DNA of 64,000 nt from Auanema rhodensis (Eukaryota; Animalia; Nematoda). Numbering within the stretch: position 1 is the stretch's first letter; each line of letters starts with the position of its first letter. Shown here one piece after another: positions 5,357-24,081 of the stretch. The notes under the pieces are model-generated. The model was given only the letters and a program-made list of their open reading frames with translations. It had not been told where the DNA came from and made no database searches. The position numbers were made by a program, and so were the translations under genes. The DNA is taken from assembly GCA_964057225.1 (NCBI GenBank), contig OZ059897.1, positions 5,456,001 through 5,520,000 of the forward strand, read 5' to 3'.

Positions 5357-7094
5357 ATGGACAGTAAAGCATCTACTAGAAGAGTATCTATTTCTACTCC
5401 AAAAAGAAGCAGAAGCCGTTCAAGTTCTCGAAAGGCCACCGGTTCTGTAGCTAAAATGTAAGAATATTTTAATGAATCTTCAATACTTATTCAGATGTCA
5501 ATGCTATTTAATTTTAAAGTAATAACTTATTGTATTTAAGGGGAAGATTAAGTCGCAGCCGATCTTCATCTGTTAAGCGCACCACGAACAATAAGTTAGT
5601 CATATGCTCGAATATAATCTCATAAATATGTTTCAGAACTAACAAACTACGTTCGAGAAGTCGCACACGTTCAGCTAGCCGAAGTTCCTCTAGATCGTGA
5701 GAACCTTTTATAAGTCTTTTACTTATTCAATTTTGATTTAGAGTAAGAACAGCTCGCAGCATTTCAAGATCCCTGAGCCGTACAGCAAACAGAAGATCCC
5801 GCAGCCACTCTGGTGGCAGAAGATCCCGATCACGTTCTGTTGCAAGGTAATTCAATTTTATGCTTATACGAATTTTGAATGTCAAATTTTAGTGTTAAAA
5901 GAGTTGAAGCACCTATGAATACTTCCATGACACAACGATCAAGATCTGCCAGCCGCAAACAACGCTCTGTTACACGCAAGAGTCGTTCTTCTTCTCGTCA
6001 AAGTCGTTCTGTTTCGCGAGGATCAACATCACACAAGAAGTCCGCCAATGTACGGCCCCAACGCCGCTCCACATCTAAGCGACGAAGCGCATCTGTCAAG
6101 AAATTAACTCCTCGCCGATCCGTTTCAAGAAAACCAAGATCAACATCGCGTAAGCCACCAACTGTTAAAAATTCTTTGAAGAAAAGCACAAGTCGCTCAA
6201 CTTCACGCAAGAACCGATCTGCATCACGCAAGAACCGTTCCACATCTCGCAAGAGCCGCTCCATTTCACGCAAGAGTCGCTCAACATCACGCAAGAGCCG
6301 TTCCACATCACGCAAGAGCGGATCTGTCTCTCGCAAGAGTAGATCTAGTTCACGCAAAAGTCGTTCTACATCAAGAAAGAGCCGCTCTGTCTCTCGCAAG
6401 AGTAGATCAACTTCACGCAAAGCCCGTTCAACTTCTCGCAAGGCCCGTTCAACTTCTCGCAAGGCCCGTTCAACTTCTCGCAAGGCCCGTTCAACTTCTC
6501 GCAAGGCCCGTTCAACTTCTCGCAAGGCCCGTTCAACTTCTCGCAAAGCCCGTTCAACTTCTCGCAAGGCCCGTTCAACTTCTCGCAAGGCTCGTTCAGC
6601 TTCTCGCAAGAGTAGATCTGCCTCCAACAAGAGTAGATCTGCCTCTCGCAAGGGTCGTTCAGCTTCACGCAAGAACCGCTCCGTCTCTCGCAAGAGTAGA
6701 TCTACTTCACGCAAGGCTCGTTCAACTTCTCGCAAGAGTCGTTCACGATCAAGCAGAAGTCGGTCACTCAAGCGCACAAATACCATCGTCCAAAAAAAGA
6801 CTCCGAGAACAAGCCGATCCATTTCAAAAACACCTGCTAAGAAATCAATGAGCAAGACTCCCAAAAAATCTGCACTGAAATCGTAAGAATTTAAATATTT
6901 ATAAAATTAGCATTACATGTTTTTTAAGTTCAACAGCTCGATCCCGCAGCCGCAGTTCTCGCTCAGTATCAAGTGTGCGTAGCCGTTCCACCTCCAGAAC
7001 ATCACGTTCAAAATCTGGATCCCGTTCAAACACCGTCTCTGAATCCAAGAAAACCCTAAGCGGTATGAAATTGCGACCCCGCCGTCAAGCATAA
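5357..7094 (+). CDS. 491-aa extremely basic Ser/Arg/Lys/Thr-rich protein, protamine-like / sperm-chromatin (SPCH-like) candidate. Exons 5357-5457, 5541-5594, 5637-5696, 5742-5846, 5893-6882, 6929-7094
   Basis: Six exons total 1476 nt in one open frame from MDSKASTRRVS to GMKLRPRRQA*. All introns are phase 2. Almost no acidic or aromatic residues. The function is inferred from composition only. Confidence 0.75.
6197..6742 (+). repeat. Coding minisatellite, 26 x 21 nt (TCAACTTCTCGCAAGGCCCGT-like), encoding the heptad S-x-S-R-K-x-R
   Basis: Units counted directly; nine near-identical STSRKAR units at 6407-6595. Confidence 0.95.
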
Positions 7095-7612: not shown

Positions 7613-10510
7613 TTAGGAATATCCTTGTCCCTGAAATTTTAAAGAAGTGATTGTAAAAAGAATAATCAATTTACCTTAAGATGTGTTAAATAGACATTTC
7701 TCTTAGTCTCTATCATTTTCTGCGGGAAAGGATTTAAATCATTGAAGGCTATCTTTAATTATTAACTTTCTTTAGATGTAAAAACGCAAAAATACCTGAG
7801 ATAAACTCTTGAAATCACTGATATGCTCAGAAGCACGACTGAGACAAGCATGTACCGTTCCAATTGTCTTGCAGTTGAGTACAGCAACTTCACACTGTTT
7901 TAAAACAGCGAGAGCAAATCGAAATAGTACCTACAACATTACATGCATTTTTGTTTTAATTTTATGAGTCTCTCACTTTGTTTCCTTCGTAGAGGAAAAT
8001 ATCAAAGATACTAAGGTAAATGGAATGGGGCAACACATCAACAAAGCATGTTAAGAACCAACTCAAAGTAAAGAGAGATAAATCGACCTACAATTAACTC
8101 TTATATAAAGTCATTACACGTTCGAGCCCACCTCTAAGTTTTTTAAATGAACAGCTAGTTTCGGTAGTTTTTCTGCAACTAAATCTCGCAGAACCTTTTG
8201 GTCAGCAACTGCTCCTATTAATGTGCTTGTATAATAACCTTCAGGCTGCAAATGCTCTACACAAGAAACCATGAACCAGAAAGCATCCTCTTCATCCAAA
8301 TACAAAAGTGCTATAGCTGCAAGTCGATTAAGACCCTGAATAAGCATCCAGTTTGTGAATTTCTTGTCATATACTTACTTGACAATACCCAACTTCTTTG
8401 TTATGGTATCGAAAAGCGTAGAGAACTCTTCTAAGCATTTCAATTTTACTGGAATCAGAGTCATCAAAATGTTTATTATTAGGTAGTGTTCGAGCAAGAT
8501 CGAGATCAATCTGTAACAAAAAAATGTAAGAATAGAGAAACAAAAAATTTAAAACCTGCTTAATAGCACTATCAAAAACTCCTTCTTCTTTTTTCGCTTT
8601 AGCCTTTCTAAGCATACATTGAAAATAGCCATTTCCTAACTCTGCTATTTTATCCTTAACAGAGAAGAATACCAAACTAAATAGGTTGACCAGATCAGTT
8701 AAGAAGCTACTATGAATCAATAACCTTTTCCACACTCTTCCACGGTATGCAGCCGGTACACCACTTCTTACCAATGATTTAAGTTCAGGGCTGGCTGAGA
8801 GCGATCTGCCAACCCAATTGACCAGCAAACTGTCCCATGATTGCAACCAAGCCATATAAGATTCACTCTGTTCCTAGAATAGATTAACGTATTTTAGGAT
8901 ACCTCCATAGATGTTACCAGACTAGTGGCCTCTACTATGCTATTAGATTTTTCCATATATTTGGCGGCAATATCTAACAAATCAGAAGACGTATTACCCT
9001 TGGTTTGCTATAAAAAACTATTCGTTACATAATAAAGCATGTTATTTACAGGTGATGAAATTTCTTTTCCATTAAGGTAAAATCCGAGAGTATCGGTCTC
9101 ACTGTTCAAAGTATCTTTCGGAGTTCTATTTGCCTCATCTAAGAGTTCCCTAAGAACTCCTGGCTCCATAACTAAACAAACTTATTATTATTATTTAAAC
9201 TTCCTAAGCCATACTTTTTCCTGGTTTTTCTGGAGACTTAAAATGGTTAAGAACCATTAAGTATCTACTTTTAAGTTGGTAGTAACAAGCTTCGATATCA
9301 AAGTTTTTTCTAATTAGGGTACGTTCTCGACTTTCAAGCGATTGTATAATAGCATGTAATTCTGAAAATTGAACTAATTCTGTAGAAAAAGGTGAACGCA
9401 CCAATTATTTCTTGGTTCAAGAAACAGTTTTGAGACTTATAACCTTCTACGAGATCCTTTAGTTCGTTTATATCATGAACACCTGCATCGTCAAACACCT
9501 ATTAAAAGATTATTTGTACTATAAAAAACAGAACAATTACTTTTTGGGCAGCCTCATCACACATTGCAGAATTCACATCAATAAGTATTCCTTCAGGAAC
9601 CTCCACTAAAAAGAGTTAATCATATAAATGATTGGAGAAAGACAAGGTATACCATCTCCAATCACGGCTGCTTCGCCTCCAACACTATCGGATTTTTCTT
9701 CGCATAATCGCATTATGAGCTCTTCCTGGAGAAAAACATAACTACGACAGAACGAGTCAACTTACTTTTGTTCGGACTGAGTCTCGGAATGCTTCTACAG
9801 ATGTTGTTAAATACGCAACTTTAGATTCAAGATCGCGATTTTCAGTTTCGAGAAACTGAACTTGTCTATGCAATGAATTGTTTTCCATTTGAAGATCTGT
9901 CATAATTTTTTCCTTTTGAAGAAGAAAATCTTTAACATCGTTATCTCCAGGCATCTCATCTAATTGTCTCCTATAATTACAATCGCTACTGGCTACGAAA
10001 TGCAAATATAAGCTAACAATGTTTCAACTTGCTTCTGAGCTGTAACTAATCCACTCTTCAGAGCTTTTATGATATCTTCAAGGAGAACTACATGATCTTC
10101 CAGTTCTCTACAGCGTTCCTCGGACTCATTCACACTATCAGAGCGCTGAAAATAAAATTATAAACACAAACGCTCATTAAAAATGTTCTCACTGATTTGC
10201 ATTCATCGCAACTTTTTCTCATTTTAAAGCTCTTGCGAGCTATATCAATAGCACGTTTAGGTACTTCAGCTAAGCTTTCATTAGTTCTATCAGCAATGCG
10301 TTGTAATACTGTTTCTGGGCTAGTTATAGTCTAAAATAATAAACTTATGAACAGTTAGAAAATTGATAAAGACTACTTTAGGCATTTCCATGCTGTTCTC
10401 GTTTAGCTGTCCATCAGGGCTTAAGTAGAATGTAGAATAGGAACCTGATGGACTAGATGTCGCATCAGCCTGTTGAAAGTTGTCAATCTGTAAGTGTTTA
10501 TATTTTATTA

Positions 10511-10541
<31 letters not shown>

Positions 10542-11388
10542 TAAAGTTGGGCATGACTCCAAAGTCGAATATAGACTTTCGACAAGAGTCTAAAGTCGAC
10601 TCAGTCAAAAATCGTATATTTTTTTTGCTTTTTTCATACTTATTCGAAAATTTTGGAATTTTGCCCAACTTTAATATGTGTGTATTACATCAAGCGGTGC
10701 AGATTCGGAACTAGATTCAAAACTTGTAGATTGGTAAGGTCCCAAGAAATTGTTAATTAAGAAATCCGCAGATCTTGATGTAAGTGGTGAATTAACTGGG
10801 TTTATATCAATAGCTGAAGATGGTGAAGACAATGAACTTATTTCCTAAAACAAAAGAATTTGTTTGCAAAAAGCCACAGATAGGCATTACAATTTTCTCT
10901 TCGGCTACGGTACTGTGCTTTCGACTTCGTTTTCTTGAATCTTGAAGCGCTCGAATCCATTCATCACGTAATTTATCAGAGGACGCTTCAAGTACATGAA
11001 TTGTATTACCAGCACTGGAGAAATAAAAATTAAATGTGCGATCTATGGTAGATAACCTACTGAATTTCAAATCGTCCTTTTTCCTGAGGATTATAAGTGA
11101 AAGCGGAACCGGTGAGACAAAGTCGTCCTACCGCTGTCACATCATCTCGCTCCTAATTTGAAACAATCAAAAAATAGAAAAAATATTAGAGAACCTTAAA
11201 CCAATACAAGTAGGGAGATACATCGGTTAAGGCAAACCAATATCTTCTTCTGGATATTAATCCAATCGCTCGAGTTTCAACCTGAATAATATTGATGATA
11301 AGTATGACCACTGAATTGAAATTACTCGATGTAAATATCCTGTCATACATGGCCGACTCACTGATAACCGCGGCGAAGTTTCGCTCAT
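7613..11388 (-). CDS. tbc-2: PH domain + coiled-coil + TBC Rab-GAP (TBC1D2-like), multi-exon
   Basis: PH-like N-terminus (GYLHR...HVLEASSDKLRDEWIRALQ). TBC motifs LVRSGVPAAYRGRVW, QIDLDLARTLP, GYCQGLNRLAA and EEDAFW. A TTTTCTAG acceptor precedes ATG 11388. Confidence 0.9.
10542..10673. mobile_element. 132-bp hAT-type MITE in a tbc-2 intron
   Basis: Perfect TIRs TAAAGTTGGGCA (10542-10553) and TGCCCAACTTTA (10662-10673). The 8-bp flanks ATATATGT and ATATGTGT match at 7 of 8 positions, consistent with a TSD. Confidence 0.75.
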
Positions 11389-11569
11389 GCGTCTAGAAAA
11401 AGTTTTCAAGAGAAATTCAATTAAAATCCAGTAAAAATCGATAATCACAAGAAGACAACAAAAATAGTATGAAAGAAAAATTTTAAACGGTAATAAAACT
11501 GAGATCAAAACGAGTCATTATTATTATTTTAAAATTAGCCAATCTCTATAGCTTTACAGGGATTATTTT

Positions 11570-14430
11570 TTAAGATTTTACAAATAAAGGCCTGTAACCC
11601 AATTGTAAATATACAAAGTAAAAAATACTGTTAGGAGGGGAATTCTTTCCTACAGTCACAAGATATTCAATTGATCGTGTTGTCTTTTTATTCCAATCGG
11701 ATATATGAATATCTTCTACATGACCGCCCAAAGATCTGAAAGCTATAGATTGTTGATTTAAAACATAATGATTTCCAACTTCAATCGTATATCATCTATT
11801 AGTTCTTCGTAAATTTGGATAATACTTAAAATATCCTTGACACAACCGCTGGACTTGGTGGATGTCTACATGAAGGCTTTGCTTTTCTTCAAACTACAGA
11901 GTAAAACTTACCCATGAAATTATGAGCACTTCTGTTTCTCTACAAACTAATTCAACATCTATAAAATTTTCCGCCGAGTCTATTTTTCTAATGGTAGAAT
12001 CAATAAGATAATTTAGCTAAAACGATAATGCATGAAACAATTACTCGAATAATAAAGTACCGTAAGGTAAAACTGTTCCCTCATTACGGCCACAATTCTC
12101 GAGAGTTTATCTACAATATATCTAAAACGTCTCTTTGTGGGAATGGCTCTCGAAATGCCGCGAAAAGCTGAAATAAATACTTTCTAAAGGCACTATATAT
12201 TGGGCTTACTATCATATTTAATAGACTCTAAAAGCTCTTTCATTCTGAAAAGTTTTAACCAAAGTTCCAGAAATCCACTCATTGCATCAACAAGAGTGGC
12301 TCGAAATAGAGAATCTAATGGAGGTGGTATCTGAATAGAAAACAGTACTTTTATCTATAAGCCGATAAAAAATAATTACAGAAGCACTGAAGGTTTTAGA
12401 CTTCAAATTAAAATCCCAAATAGTAGCTCTTGATACCCCAGACGTACTGAGTACTTGAGAGAAACAAATTTCCTGGAACATATTTTTCTAATTTTCTCCT
12501 GAACATTTCCCTACTTTTCTTCCCGGTTTGTATAAATATTGTGCAAGAATATCCGAAAATTTCCCAATCAATAAAACCTTAACGCTTAATAAATATTAGC
12601 CTTTTTTCGTTCTAACTAACTTTCATATCCTTATACAGGGATATTAAGTGTTTTTCCTTCGTTACAGTAAACAATTCTGCGGACCAAACTTCCGAAACTT
12701 TTCTTGCAGCTCGAAGCATAACTTCTCGAAGCTCATCTACATTGAACAGTCTAAACAAGATAAAGATATAAATACATATAAAAATATTTAGAACATACCT
12801 CTGTTTTTTAAAATTAATCTCGCTAGTAATCTCTTCTTCTATAGCGTTAGTGTAAAATGGTTCACAATGCGATTTTAATTTAAGCATTTTTCGAAATTTT
12901 AGGGCTCGGACAATCTAAAAAACAACCAAAATGCTGATAAGAGGGAAATACATTAGAAAAAAAACCTCTGTTATCAAAGGCAAACTCCATAAAGTCAAAC
13001 TCAAATCGCCAGCTTTTCGTACAAATATCTGATCAGGTTCAGTTATTTCACTGAAAAACAATATCTCAAAAAATTGATAAAAATTAAAGAACTTGAAAAA
13101 AATCGAATGATCGGTAAATCCTGCAGGAATCGTCAAAGATGAGAAAACATAATCAAGGAATCGGAATTGAGTACTCAAGAACTGTTTTTGAATTTTGGCA
13201 GCGTAATCTGCCTAAATGAGAATAAAAAAAGAAAACGTCTTAAAAAACACAAACTAAGTGACTCACAGCGGGGGTGGAGGAATAAGCGAATGAGCCAGTA
13301 GAGTTGATAAGGATAAACCACGCATACTCAACCTATATTAAATTTAAAAATAAATGATATAACATTAACACTGAACTTCTATCCATTTCCACTTATGCCC
13401 ACTTTTAATGGGAGACACCATATAATAAATCATTTGAGTTTTATCCCGTAGTGTTTGCGTCTCCATGGGTAGAGATTGAATTACTTAAAATGAGCATTTG
13501 AATTAAAAAATAAAAATAAAGTCAAATCGAACCAATATTTTTTCTCGATAATTCATCGATTGAATTTTCACAGTCGTCAAGAAATGATCTGATTATTGAG
13601 CATAAACACTAAACTTTGTATCATTAATAAATCCCTCTAGTTAATACCTACTTCAATGAAAACCGGAGGATTCTGTATAGTTTCTTGACGGTCAACAAAG
13701 CTGATTATTTCATCCAATTGTTGAAGAAGAGGTAAGAATGAACTAACCATAGCTTCCAACTAAACAAACACAATGACCCGGAAAAATCATTTCAACTACC
13801 GTTTCTTTTTGCAAACATGACAGGATATCATTTGATGGAAAAGAGAACAATGTATTCATCACAACTCTGTCATCTTCTACTATGAACAAACAATCTTCAA
13901 AGAAAATTAACTATATTAAATACATCAAAAAGCACACCATCCGTCTGTTTCTGGAGGAAACGTGGAGTTCGAATAAATTGTAGAATATGATAAACTAGAG
14001 AACGAGAATTGAGAATGTAGTATTGCTGTCTTAAATCTTAATGATTGGAACATAATGAAATTTAATTAACTACCTCTCATCATAACGACTTGAAATTTCC
14101 TTTTTCAACACATTATCCCAGTACTTCTTATTTGTTAAATCATGCTCTACTCTAATGGCATTCTTAGTGATTGGCGGTAAATTATTATTCCATCTAGATG
14201 TTCCATATCCGGAGTCACGTCCTGTTTGTAATAAGTCCTCGCTTACTGAGCTACCATCCTCGAAATTATAGAAATTTAACTAAAAGGAATTTATTCCAGC
14301 ACACTATCGAAACATCAAAATACCTCCTCAGCTATCAAATCAATATCATATGGAACGTCATAATCATAGAAATCATCTTCCTATATAATCTACATGAACC
14401 AAATTTACAAAATCAGGTGAAACAAACCAT
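11570..14430 (-). CDS. Divergent gamma-tubulin complex component (Spc97/Spc98 GRIP family), most like GCP5/TUBGCP5; about 20 small exons
   Basis: Spliced peptides MEDDFYDYDVPYDIDLIAEE..RDSGYGT..VEHDLTNKKYWDN, SLVYHILQFI..LFIVEDDRVVMN..LSCLQKETLEAMVSSFLPLLQQLDEIISFVD and KVLFSIQIPPPLDSLF..GFLELWLKLFRMKELL parallel GRIP1/GRIP2 segments of animal GCP5 as I recall them. Confidence 0.65.
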
Positions 14431-14860
14431 TATGATTTTAAATATGTCGAGAAGAAAAACAAACTTTCAGATTGAAACTTAAAAGGTGCTCATTAGCTTT
14501 AAATCATTGAATGAAAACAGATATCTTACAAAGTCTAATTGAGTATTGAAAAAACATTTTAGAATTTTTAGATTCATTAAGCTTATTAAACATATATACC
14601 TAGTAACTATTAAGTGCATTCAACAATCTAAGATGAGTAAATGACTAGAAGAAAACGTCAAGATGATAGCTAGGTAAAATAAACAAGACTTATGAACGGA
14701 TAAACATTAAAACAATATTAAAAACATCTAAACCTGGTAAACTAATGGTTCTACACAACCTAGACGTATGGCAAATTATTCAAAACATCCTGGATAACAG
14801 AATATGATCGTTTTCATTATTATTTTTTGATTCTGTACAAACATGACAATAAGAGCTCAA

Positions 14861-17800
14861 CTAAGGAGAAGGAGAATCAGTTCGTAAAAACGATGATGAG
14901 AACTGCTCTAAATTTCGGAGCAGTAAAGCGGTTTTTCCTCTGAAAACAACATTATATAATAAATGAATTTTACTTGCTAAATTTACTTGATTGTAGCAAA
15001 GGCTTTCAGAGTTGAGTCCACTTTTTCAATCTTTCTCTTGCCTTTATCTAAATCATCCTTCATTTCTCGGTGGACACCACCAACAGTGGTTCTGAGACCA
15101 TCAAACACTTGATCCATTTCTCTAAAGATAAAGCTTTTTTTCCGATTTGAAAAGCGTCAACGATACCTCACAGCCTGGACTTCACAATGAGAAATATGGG
15201 CAGCAGCAACCTATAGTAAAGTTTTGAGATGTAAAAGGTGATCTGCTGGGGACAAACCTGCTTCATTCTGGCAGCTAAGTGAGATCTAAATTGCTCCTTG
15301 AAGTGCTGCTCTTTAGCACTCGAATTCCAACGTAGTCTTTCCATAGCATACAATCCACCGTAACAGGCTGCACCAACAGCAATAACCTTAACGTTCCGAT
15401 TTTACATAGAACAGAGATAACTAAAAAAATACCCTCCATCCAACAGCTTTATAAACAATTCCACAAGCTACCATCACTCCGATACTACCATTTGCTAAAT
15501 AAGCAGCTGAGCTTAGGACCATTTGAGTCATCACGGCGTTTTCTTCCGCAGCCAAATATACAGCATCGTTAGGATCATCTCGTAAAGCTTTGTGCTGAAA
15601 AATCATGACTACACAGTGAAACACTACCTCAATGAGTAATACCGCTCTCATTGGTGTTAAAAGATTTGTTTGAATAGCGGTAACAGGCTGGCCAGATCTA
15701 TACGCAACAATTCTGCGGATTATCGAGGATAATCCAAACGTAAAACGGAATTCAAGGTCCTCATGAAAATCTCTGGAAGTTGAAAATTATACAAATCGAA
15801 GAAAAAGTTATTCATACTTAACAAGAGCAGGTGCGTCAACACAGATAGAAAACTTGAATGGTGCTCTATAGCGCCACACTTCTTCTAGTTTATGTTGGTA
15901 AGGCTCTGCCAAAATCTTTTTAACAAAATCTAAATCAAGTAAATGGGCTATTGAACCATAACAGGTAATAACATACGGAACATATCATTTTCTAAATTCC
16001 AAATCCTAGACATGAGACCACCTGTGCAACGCGCCTCTAGATCGGCGTTCACGGAATCATTAGTGAATATTGAGAGTGCCTTAAACCAAAACATAGCTTA
16101 TACAATGAAACAATACTGGAATGTACCTCCTTATATTTCTCGATTCCTTCAGAAGAATCCATAAAAGGTTGATTAAATCTATCAATTATTGCCTCGAGTC
16201 TCATAATCTCTTCAGCAAAATCGGCAGATACCTAAACAAAAATTAAAGCGAGATTTATGAGATGATATAAGATAAAAAAAACCTTGAGATGAACTTCCGC
16301 TCTTAAATGCTCAGTTTGCTCTCTGTATGCCTTTTCAAATTGGAAAAAGTTATTTCGACAATCATTAAACAGCTGTGTAGCTGCCTTAAAACAGTATGTG
16401 CTAGCAAATGTTAATATTAGAATACCATCAATCCTTCCTCATATTTAACTTTTTGTTCAGTTACTTTTCCTTGAGCAACATCAACATTGAATCGTATCTT
16501 TTGTATTATTTCTAATGCACGACGATTATGAGCTTCAAACTTTGATAATATAGCGGATCTAACAATAAAGAATATGATGGCTAAAATTTGAAAAGGGATA
16601 CCTCGATATACATTGCTCAAAGTTTTTCTCAAAATTTTCGAATTCCAACAAACGTTCTTTTGAGCCAGCTACTTGATATGCACTTTTGGTGAGACCTTTT
16701 TCTTTTAAACGAGCTTCCAAAACCTAAACAGAAGCATGAACTGGAGAGACATGTAAAATGGCAAACCTCACGAGCAGATACAAAATAAATGCGATTATTG
16801 ACTTCTTTTTCTGTACAAACTTCAAGTTCATTGACTAAAAACTGTCTAAACCTATTTTGATGCTGTTTTTTGACCTAAATAAGTTTATTATATAAAAGAT
16901 TCATGTAATCAATACCTCTTCTACATCTTCCTCCGAGGCACTAGCATCCCATCGATTGTTCAAAATAAAAACATTTGGTTTGCTTAATTTTTTAGAAACA
17001 CGGTAGAAAAAACTCTTCTCCTTTAAAATAAAAAATGCAAAACTTTAAAATATAAAAACTAACAGCTTGAGTAAGAGTCGATTCAGCGTTTAAAACTAAA
17101 ACGAACACATCAGCATCGAGACAATGTTTATCAATCCAACTATCGAACTCGGGCGATAAATCGACACCGGGACTAAACAATAGTTGAAATATTATAATTC
17201 AAAGAAACCTACCTATCAAGCAAAACAACATCATTTTGGAGAAGTCTATTCTCATTACTCTCACTATCACCAATTGGATGAAAAATTCTAGATAAATATT
17301 TTTCTATATTAATGTAAATAGAATTATGCACCTTAAAAGAGAATCTTGTCCCATTTCAGGAATATCTGAGTTTTCGGTGCTCATAGCATGTCCTATCTTT
17401 CCAAGTTCTTTAACATCAATTCGAGATGGATCATCCCCCATTATCATATAACCATTATCATCTCGACAACCTTGAACCTGCAATTACAATGAGTTACATT
17501 AGAACACACAATAATAAATAAACCTGTAGAAAGCAACAAGTGGTATGACCCATTCCTTGGGGTAACACTTTGTTATGAAGCATAGCATTAATAGTAGTAC
17601 TTTTTCCGTTACTTGTCCTACAAGTATAACAATAAAAAAAGAGAAACTATTTTCGTACAACCTGCCAAAGAATACTACTTTCATATTATCTCTTCGAAAA
17701 GTATCCATGATAGTTTGGATAGATTCTTTTAAAACAGTAATTTCAGATTCCTGCTCTTGGGGAATAACATGAGAACTTTCTTCCAAGGAAATATCTATAA

Positions 17801-18074
17801 ATCTATCATGAGCACCTGTTACAGCCTATGGTTCACCTTTATATATACTATTAAGCTCATTAACATGATCGCCTAAATCTGTATAAATTTCGCCCAAAAC
17901 TTTTTTTGCTTCTTTGAATCTTAATAAAGGTTCATCTCCATTAATTCTTCGTGTCGGTTTTCCAGACACTAAAGGAATAAACAATGTTAATAGTTTTATT
18001 TGAATGCAATACTTACAAGTCATATGAGCTCGTACATAATCACCGCTTTGATTTTGTGGCATGTATGCGCTCAT
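14861..18074 (-). CDS. fzo-1: Mitofusin / fuzzy onions GTPase
   Basis: [21 protein letters not shown]-loop, [43 protein letters not shown] region [19 protein letters not shown]-terminus LRTDSPSP*. Confidence 0.95.
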
Positions 18075-18515
18075 ACTTGAGTCATAAACACCTCTAAAAT
18101 AAAAAAAATACTAAAACTGAGTAATATAAATTATGTAAAGCATAAAACTATGGTGAATATGCAGATTAAAAGATAGACAAACAATCAAATATTGTACGTA
18201 ATGTGTATACATTTGAAAATACGCGAACTTCCGTTTTATTGTAAGTTATCAGTTAAAATGAACTTGCTAGATTAGTAAATTGAAAATTTTTATGTTACAA
18301 ATTATTCCTTTTAATTTTTAAAGGGATTAGAGTTTGGGTAATGAAAATAAGCATAAAAACTTTATTGTTTTCGAATTATAAAAATATATTTTTATATTTA
18401 ATGTTTAGCAATGCTTTCCATATAAAAGTCAATTACTAACCCTATATAATTTACAAAACGAAAACAAATACATCGTCTATTCTGAATACAAGCAAAATTA
18501 TAATATATTGATATC

Positions 18516-23268: not shown

Positions 23269-24081
23269 TTAATCCCGTAATTGTGCTAAACGTTGGGTCA
23301 TAGCTTCAAATTCTTCGTTCTGTTCAACATGAGGTCCATCAACCAGTGGGTTAGTAACAGCAGCAGGTGCTTTACCAAGCTCTCCGGCAGTAATTTCCCA
23401 TAGAATCTTATCGACCTCTTCCTGAACAAAAATATTAATGAAATATTTAAAAGAATAATTCACATTGGCCTCTTCTTCAAGTCCTTCAGGTTCTAAACTT
23501 TCCATAGTATCAGAAATCATTTCATCAATTATTCCGAGTTTTGTCATCTCACCAGACATTTCTCTCATAGTTTTCATAATCTCCGGAACCTGAAATATAT
23601 ATATATATAATTCAACAAAGACTTCCACACCTTGACGAGACTCTGCATACTTCTCATAACTTCTGTAGATTTTTGTAGTGAACCAGCCATTCGAATAGTT
23701 GCAAGTTGCTCTTGCATACACATAATTACACTATTTATTTGAGCTTTACTAACGTGTATCTTGGATATAGCCTAAACTAATAAATTAAAAAATGTTCCTT
23801 GTTAAAAAGAAGAAAACCTTTCGCGATTGTAACAAAGATTTAGCTAATATAATACAGACATCTCTATCACCTTTTTTAGCGGCGTCTTTAATTTCTTTTG
23901 TTACCTAAAATAACAAATAGAAGAAACTGAAAAATGAGTAATGTTTACAAAATACCTTGAGCTCTTCTCTTTGAATACCATGAATTTGCCTATCCAACGT
24001 CCTAACTTCCTGTCTCATTTTCCTTTGGAGCTCACGCACTTGCTCTTTCGGATCCTTTTTCTTCCCAAAAAGTCCCATCAT
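23269..24081 (-). CDS. vps-24: ESCRT-III subunit CHMP3/Vps24
   Basis: MGLFGKKKDPKEQVRE..LDRQI..AAKKGDRDVCIILAK..GSLQKSTEVM..EEVDKILWEITAGELGKAP..MTQRLAQLRD*. Confidence 0.95.

Follow-up and report, generated by a model that had tools for sequence, protein, structure and literature searches.

The gene at 11570-14430 and its transcript

We focus here on a single minus-strand gene in the window, by which we mean the whole 64,000-nucleotide stretch of Auanema rhodensis DNA that was analysed. The open-reading-frame track of the minus strand shows the gene only as fragments, from 11570 to 14430. It is the sole gene between the orthologues of fzo-1 and tbc-2, and all three genes are on the same strand. 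Pfam places a Fzo_mitofusin domain at 15421-15651 and a RabGAP-TBC domain at 8114-8855, both on the minus strand, and thus confirms the flanks that had been named in a first-pass annotation of this DNA.

The gene model is built on the contigs of four small runs of one study, which were found by a run search and in which about half of the sampled words are present, as for spliced RNA. Over window:11300-14800, these contigs skip 19 short stretches whose ends read CT..AC on the plus strand and hence GT..AG on the minus strand. DNA would retain such stretches; the contigs therefore derive from RNA. The resulting minus-strand gene is made up of 20 exons, separated by 19 GT..AG introns that measure 40-55 nt. 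Fifteen of the 19 joints were read directly, all of them CT..AC on the plus strand, and the other four were placed from the record coordinates together with the requirement for an open frame. For exons 4 and 5, exactly 187 nt are exonic between 14074 and 13800, a length that two GT..AG solutions fit; the alternative splice (14036-13924 / 13873-13800) runs into a stop and was rejected. The joined mRNA, at 2151 nt, is as long as the longest contig. The first AUG in it lies at 14430, with codon 2 separated from it by a 47-nt intron, and the frame stays open through all 19 joints to give a protein of 666 aa with an acidic N-terminus (32% D/E over the first 40 aa). The 181-Mb assembly contains one copy of the gene. 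The many-exon gene proposed in the first-pass annotation is thus real, and the coding span that it gave is exact. The features of the locus are as follows.

14581..18110, minus strand: fzo-1 (mitofusin) orthologue, the upstream neighbour; end of its transcript about 100 nt from the start of the gene
11470..14482, minus strand: whole transcript, 20 exons, 2105-2151 nt spliced, from the contigs of the four runs
11570..14430, minus strand: CDS span, ATG 14430-14428, stop TAA 11572-11570, 666 aa
14428..14480, minus strand: exon 1, 5′ UTR and the ATG alone; joint inferred from record arithmetic and GT..AG ends
14324..14380, minus strand: exon 2, aa 2-20, acidic stretch; joint inferred
14074..14279, minus strand: exon 3, aa 21-89, N-terminal tail; contig piece observed
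14199..14216, minus strand: DSGYGT motif, aa 42-47
13938..14029, minus strand: exon 4, aa 89-120, first GRIP1-type helix LVYHILQFI; the only GT..AG solution with an open frame
13800..13894, minus strand: exon 5, aa 120-151; contigs and model
13652..13759, minus strand: exon 6, aa 152-187; joints observed in contigs
13533..13608, minus strand: exon 7, aa 188-213; contigs
13377..13483, minus strand: exon 8, aa 213-248; contigs
13267..13332, minus strand: exon 9, aa 249-270; contigs
13093..13211, minus strand: exon 10, aa 271-310; contigs
12966..13050, minus strand: exon 11, aa 310-338; contigs
12799..12914, minus strand: exon 12, aa 339-377; contigs
12621..12750, minus strand: exon 13, aa 377-420, ending in ...HLISLYKDMK (GRIP2-type start); contigs
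12515..12577, minus strand: exon 14, aa 421-441, VLLIGKFSDIL...; contigs
12380..12472, minus strand: exon 15, aa 442-472; contigs
12210..12330, minus strand: exon 16, aa 473-513; contigs
12061..12167, minus strand: exon 17, aa 513-548; contigs
11912..12016, minus strand: exon 18, aa 549-583; contigs
11780..11865, minus strand: exon 19, aa 584-612; contigs
11470..11735, minus strand: exon 20, aa 612-666 and 3′ UTR; the contigs end at 11470-11518
7758..11416, minus strand: tbc-2 (RabGAP-TBC) orthologue, the downstream neighbour; its first exon lies about 55-150 nt from the 3′ end of the gene

The spacing of fzo-1, this gene and tbc-2 looks operon-like; a literature search returned nothing on an operon, nor on the accessions of the four runs. 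The peptides that had been picked out before splicing are all found in the spliced protein. The acidic N-terminus, DSGYGT, EH..YW, LVYHILQFI, LFIVEDDRV, LSCLQKETL and SFVD are present, as are HLISLYKDMKVLL..SDIL, IPPPLDSLF..LWLKLFRMKELL and IDSAENFIDV, all in the order in which they had been reported. The one small error is 'FSIQ' ahead of IPPPLDSLF, which is intron; the spliced protein reads FSAS-IPPPLDSLF.

Orthologous loci and similarity to gtap-1

The gene itself gave no database matches, and its conserved neighbours were used as handles to orthologous loci, the tbc-2 piece leading to contig L002 and the fzo-1 piece to contig L005. In both contigs a single middle gene lies between fzo-1 and tbc-2, and order and orientation match those of the window; in both, the middle gene aligns to the window gene. 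A look between fzo-1 and tbc-2 in other nematodes had been proposed in the first-pass annotation. L005 also has a galectin gene and an M13 peptidase gene, and its middle gene has large exons, with a cuticle collagen gene nested inside a 1.5-kb intron. In the Haemonchus placei contig L004, no match was found in the 10 kb upstream of the TBC fragment, a blank that is probably due to large introns.

Three listed papers on C. elegans cite ZK1248.14, and two of them deal with mitochondrial dynamics; ZK1248.14 belongs to the same cosmid as ZK1248.13 and is fzo-1, and tbc-2 is ZK1248.10. GTAP-1 is the product of ZK1248.13 (Haruta 2022), and its residues I70, F73, C81, R85 and R92 lie in an N-terminal segment that touches GCP2 and GTAP-2 (Krutyholowa 2026). 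When exons 1 to 4 of the middle gene of L005 are spliced, by way of GT..AG introns of 45-49 nt, the protein has all five of these published residues at exactly the published numbers, and L005 therefore carries the gtap-1 of C. elegans or of a very close relative. The corresponding F-x7-C-x3-R-x6-R pattern is likewise present in L007, offset by two residues.

Alignment of the joined window protein model to the L005 gene gives five collinear blocks at about 24% identity. The block at aa 164-300 has a z of 11.9, which none of 300 shuffles reaches, and a tblastn E of 8e-8; that at aa 93-111 (z 5.2) pairs exon 4 of the window gene with exon 4 of L005, and the others lie at aa 314-426 (z 3.6, exons 11-13), aa 477-513 (z 3.1) and aa 510-553 (z 2.7). 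To the L002 gene, the window protein aligns over its whole length, with exon 13 at z 5.4, and exon 16 aligns to both L002 and L005. Furthermore, at least three intron positions are common to the window gene and its orthologues. A phase-0 intron after exon 2, the acidic segment, is shared with L002 and L005 (AEE/LNFY, LDE/LKFY and TQE/TMFY, with a slash for the intron), another shared position is KET/LEAM versus KSY/LRTL, and yet another falls within an Asn codon (FF-N-EI versus LH-N-DV). The shared positions include that of the intron before exon 6, common to L005, and that of the phase-2 intron before exon 11, which corresponds to the 1.5-kb collagen-bearing intron of L005.

The likeness to C. 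elegans GTAP-1 thus comprises the slot between fzo-1 and tbc-2, the strand, collinear similarity over the whole length and shared introns, together with an acidic N-terminus, a KK[FY]..NV segment in the tail, a helix near 95-100 and the absence of an MZT1-type domain. The window protein, on the other hand, is only about 24% identical and its tail is about 7 aa shorter. The gene structures also differ: C. elegans-type genes have fewer, larger exons and one intron with the nested collagen gene, whereas the window gene has 19 tiny introns. At this locus we have observed a gene model, its transcription, a conserved position and collinear similarity to a gene with the published GTAP-1 residues. Judged by sequence and position, the gene is the orthologue of gtap-1 itself and no extra hidden GCP5. 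We consider it very probable that this is the gtap-1 (ZK1248.13) orthologue of this nematode, most likely encoding a very divergent GCP-family protein with the ring role of GTAP-1.

GCP-family membership, proposed role and alternative readings

Vertebrate GCP5 (TUBGCP5), the proposed ancestor of GTAP-1, has the equivalent spoke in its own four-spoke module, and its GRIP1/GRIP2 layout is expected to be alike. In contrast, the window protein is much shorter (666 aa), is without the long MZT1-binding N-terminal domain and has no exon-wise match to a GCP profile. GCP4 (TUBGCP4), the minimal GCP, is of similar size and likewise has no N-terminal extension; its role in the C. elegans complex is taken by GCP2, however, not by GTAP-1, and no sequence match to it was found here. 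C. elegans GTAP-2 (ZK632.5), also from the four-spoke module, is a sister protein and a divergent GCP specific to nematodes, but differs in its actin-binding N-terminal domain, its GCP6-like ancestry and its locus. Finally, the worm partner is GCP2, where that of GCP5 is GCP4 (Krutyholowa 2026).

By sequence, GIP-1 and GIP-2 are recognisable GCPs; the GTAPs have no BLAST similarity outside Caenorhabditis, and AlphaFold predicts a GCP-like shape for GTAP-1 (Haruta 2022). Recent papers term GTAP-1 Caenorhabditis-specific. The C. elegans gamma-tubulin ring complex has been solved by cryo-EM (Krutyholowa 2026, preprint), and in it a GCP2/GTAP-1/GCP2/GTAP-2 four-spoke module replaces GCP4/5/4/6, with GTAP-1 at a GCP5-like spoke. 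The GTAPs have GRIP1 and GRIP2, but their N-termini are not obviously homologous to MZT1-binding domains; HMM analysis points to a GCP5-like ancestor for GTAP-1, and the GTAP-1 and GCP5 profiles detect each other (Krutyholowa 2026). The first-pass annotation had suggested that the gene may be a bridge between the GTAP proteins and canonical GCPs. Such a link does hold in the literature, where it has already been published on the strength of cryo-EM and HMM evidence (Krutyholowa 2026).

The Pfam GCP N- and C-terminal profiles, put forward in the first-pass annotation as a check, were run exon by exon, and neither GCP_N nor GCP_C matches any exon or open stretch of the gene, even at E 10, with the exons of 21-68 aa giving profile searches little power. 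Pieces of the L002 gene give no GCP profile match at E 10 either, and GCP_C_terminal (GRIP2) matches no window exon and no orthologue piece. The sole Pfam match to the family is a weak one of GCP_N_terminal on a 159-aa exon of L005 (11851-12327; E 0.16, 11.9 bits), which covers profile positions 39-116 in the expected register. Among about 14 noise-level Pfam matches over 41 pieces, the chance of one being to the GCP family is about 1e-3; the match is not reproduced on P0015 and P0016, the two sequences most closely related to the L005 piece. A six-frame GCP_N/GCP_C scan of the whole genome has 0 candidates anywhere and is hence uninformative.

Sequence searches of the PDB, by phmmer with three stretches of the window gene, a piece of L005 and a three-sequence profile, returned no GCP chain; the C. 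elegans ring model, whose release is tied to publication (Krutyholowa 2026), may be missing from the copy searched. A representative library queried with window:12615-12914 (minus strand) has 0 matches, with the gene itself missing too. The protein is therefore simply absent from that library, and the blank says nothing on novelty. A metagenome scan with the same stretch gave no match. Of two Atlas feature searches, the first gave no usable match and the second gave dynein-stem-like helix clusters of low recognition, not GCPs, which we read as generic long-helix features. AlphaFold of an orthologous GRIP1 fragment (P0015, alignment A1) is all helices at pLDDT 35 and is unusable. A closer kinship of the window sequence to canonical GCPs could not be shown and is unsupported at the level of sequence, as none of its exons matches a GCP profile. 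Assignment of the protein to the GCP fold would instead be carried over through orthology from the published structure of C. elegans GTAP-1, and the spoke position and GCP5-like ancestry likewise come from the literature by way of orthology.

By analogy with C. elegans, the protein may do the same job in this species. First of all, one gamma-tubulin would be bound by the C-terminal (GRIP2) half. Second, the N-terminal (GRIP1) half would pack laterally against GCP2 (GIP-2). Third, the N-terminal tail of about 95 aa would follow the adjacent GCP2 in the direction of GTAP-2. Such contacts would jointly build a GCP2/GTAP-1/GCP2/GTAP-2 four-spoke module in place of GCP4/5/4/6 in the worm gamma-tubulin ring complex.

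The alternative that survives best is that the gene encodes a lineage-specific, fast-evolving protein of gtap-1 ancestry, whose role in the gamma-tubulin ring has been lost or was never had here. An identity of about 24% next to conserved neighbours (62% for the fzo-1 piece) and the lack of a GCP profile match on any exon are what such a protein might be expected to display. However, the ORF is intact and expressed, the similarity is whole-length in three deep lineages and includes the GRIP2-type blocks, the position and several intron sites have been kept, and C. elegans GTAP-1 is equally undetectable by BLAST yet is a core ring subunit. We thus regard a loss of the ring role as improbable.

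Less probable still is a retained, fast-evolving canonical GCP5 that forms a separate hidden subunit beside the GTAP proteins, as the first-pass annotation had it. In its favour are the motif layout on which that proposal was built, and a size and an all-helical prediction that would fit any GCP. The gene, on the other hand, sits in the gtap-1 slot and is collinear with the gene bearing the published GTAP-1 residues. The genome contains one copy of it and thus lacks a second gtap-1-like gene that it could accompany, and the tail of about 95 aa before the first GRIP1-type helix leaves no room for a GCP5-type MZT1-binding domain. What stands of the proposal is that the family is related to GCP5; what falls is the extra subunit, since the gene occupies the gtap-1 slot and aligns to gtap-1. 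Finally, an ordinary gip-1 (GCP3) or gip-2 (GCP2) orthologue has nothing in its favour beyond wider GCP-family membership and can be dismissed, as position and similarity point to gtap-1 and no exon matches Pfam GCP_N or GCP_C, whereas GIP-1 and GIP-2 are recognisable by sequence (Haruta 2022).

The N-terminal tail and the evolution of gtap-1

In the N-terminal tail, an acidic, low-complexity stretch of about 95 residues precedes the first GRIP1-type helix, which begins near residue 95-100 in both the window and the L005 proteins. In C. elegans GTAP-1, residues ~54-100 form the GCP2/GTAP-2 contact segment directly before GRIP1 (Krutyholowa 2026), and a short N-terminal tail directly ahead of GRIP1 is a GTAP-1 feature that the four-species tail alignment also finds in the window protein. 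The tail is too short for a GCP5-type domain, in agreement with the earlier suggestion that an MZT1-binding N-terminal extension is lacking. By eye, KKY73 of the window protein matches KKF73 of L005, and both proteins have an Arg numbered 85; the aligned window positions do not retain C81 and R92 of GTAP-1.

Upstream of the contact segment, the tail contains the DSGYGT motif (aa 42-47), which the first-pass annotation had likened to a beta-TrCP degron. The motif is certainly present, but of two further lineages compared a single one retains the canonical DSGxx[ST]: L002 has DSGYTT as its counterpart, and in the C. elegans-type L005 and L007, which have DSAVCL[TN], it is absent; on this alignment the canonical beta-TrCP motif is not a feature of the family. 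DS followed by a small residue is the only invariant part across the aligned orthologues. A 'DS[GA]...T.R' island is better conserved than any other part of the tail, which otherwise drifts freely, and lies just upstream of the GCP2/GTAP-2 contact segment. It is conceivable, if unlikely, that the DS[GA] island is a phospho-switch that sets the amount of the four-spoke module, and that rhabditids other than Caenorhabditis keep a canonical beta-TrCP (LIN-23) degron. If so, the C. elegans-type proteins would have lost or altered that degron.

The fast evolution proposed for the gene is borne out by comparison with its neighbours. Identity of the window genes to those of L002 is about 64% for fzo-1 and about 65% for tbc-2, and the fzo-1 piece is 62% identical between the window and L005. 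The middle gene, in contrast, is 31-54% identical to that of L002 in a few short tblastn blocks and about 25% in longer alignments, so that it is far less conserved than fzo-1 and tbc-2.

A disguised GCP5 in worms is already in print, together with a cryo-EM structure, and the present gene therefore adds breadth rather than concept. It provides a transcript-supported gtap-1 model from a worm that is far removed from the C. elegans-type species, and the syntenic orthologues in three deep lineages show how fast gtap-1 evolves. Furthermore, the divergent sequences are now supplied for alignments that link the GTAPs to GCP5, and syntenic orthologues that branch so deeply could help to date, as intermediate steps, the switch from GCP4/5/6 to the GTAPs.

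The conserved island of the N-terminal tail

We first consider the N-terminal tail of the GTAP-1 orthologues, the best-kept part of which is the motif DS[GA], followed a few residues on by T.R. This island is small, and the rest of the tail is drifting.

Positions of the DS[GA] island in gtap-1 genes
Window, 14199-14216: island of the A. rhodensis gene
L002, 5108-5341: island in a second nematode contig
L005, 11227-11346: island in a C. elegans-type contig
L007, 1202-1552: island in a further C. elegans-type gene

Introns and a nested collagen gene

Intron sizes in these genes are extreme: all 19 introns of the window gene (11470-14482) measure 40-55 nt, and the introns at the three resolved junctions of the L002 gene (4938-7640) measure just 35-38 nt. 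In L005, a 1.5-kb gtap-1 intron houses a cuticle collagen gene (Col_cuticle_N; 12426-13487, minus strand), whereas the equivalent position in the window gene is occupied by a bare 42-nt intron (13051-13092).

Other features of the window

Just past tbc-2, the RabGAP-TBC gene, lies a 335-aa open frame (5879-6886, plus strand) consisting almost entirely of repeated S-R-K-[SAN]-R-S-[TVA]-S units; it has no match in Pfam and may encode an RS-rich protein or be a repeat array. Within a tbc-2 intron, positions 10480-10560 form a short (TA)n/(ATATAT)n microsatellite, and a survey of the window's longer open reading frames gave a Snf7 (ESCRT-III) domain match in an open stretch at 23269-23721 (minus strand).

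Arrangement of fzo-1, gtap-1 and tbc-2

On the minus strand (7758-18110), the mitofusin gene fzo-1 is followed head to tail by gtap-1 and then tbc-2, with gaps of about 55-150 nt between them, and no spliced-leader sequence is visible in the RNA contigs. These three genes form an equally tight trio in L002 and L005, and the arrangement looks like an operon.
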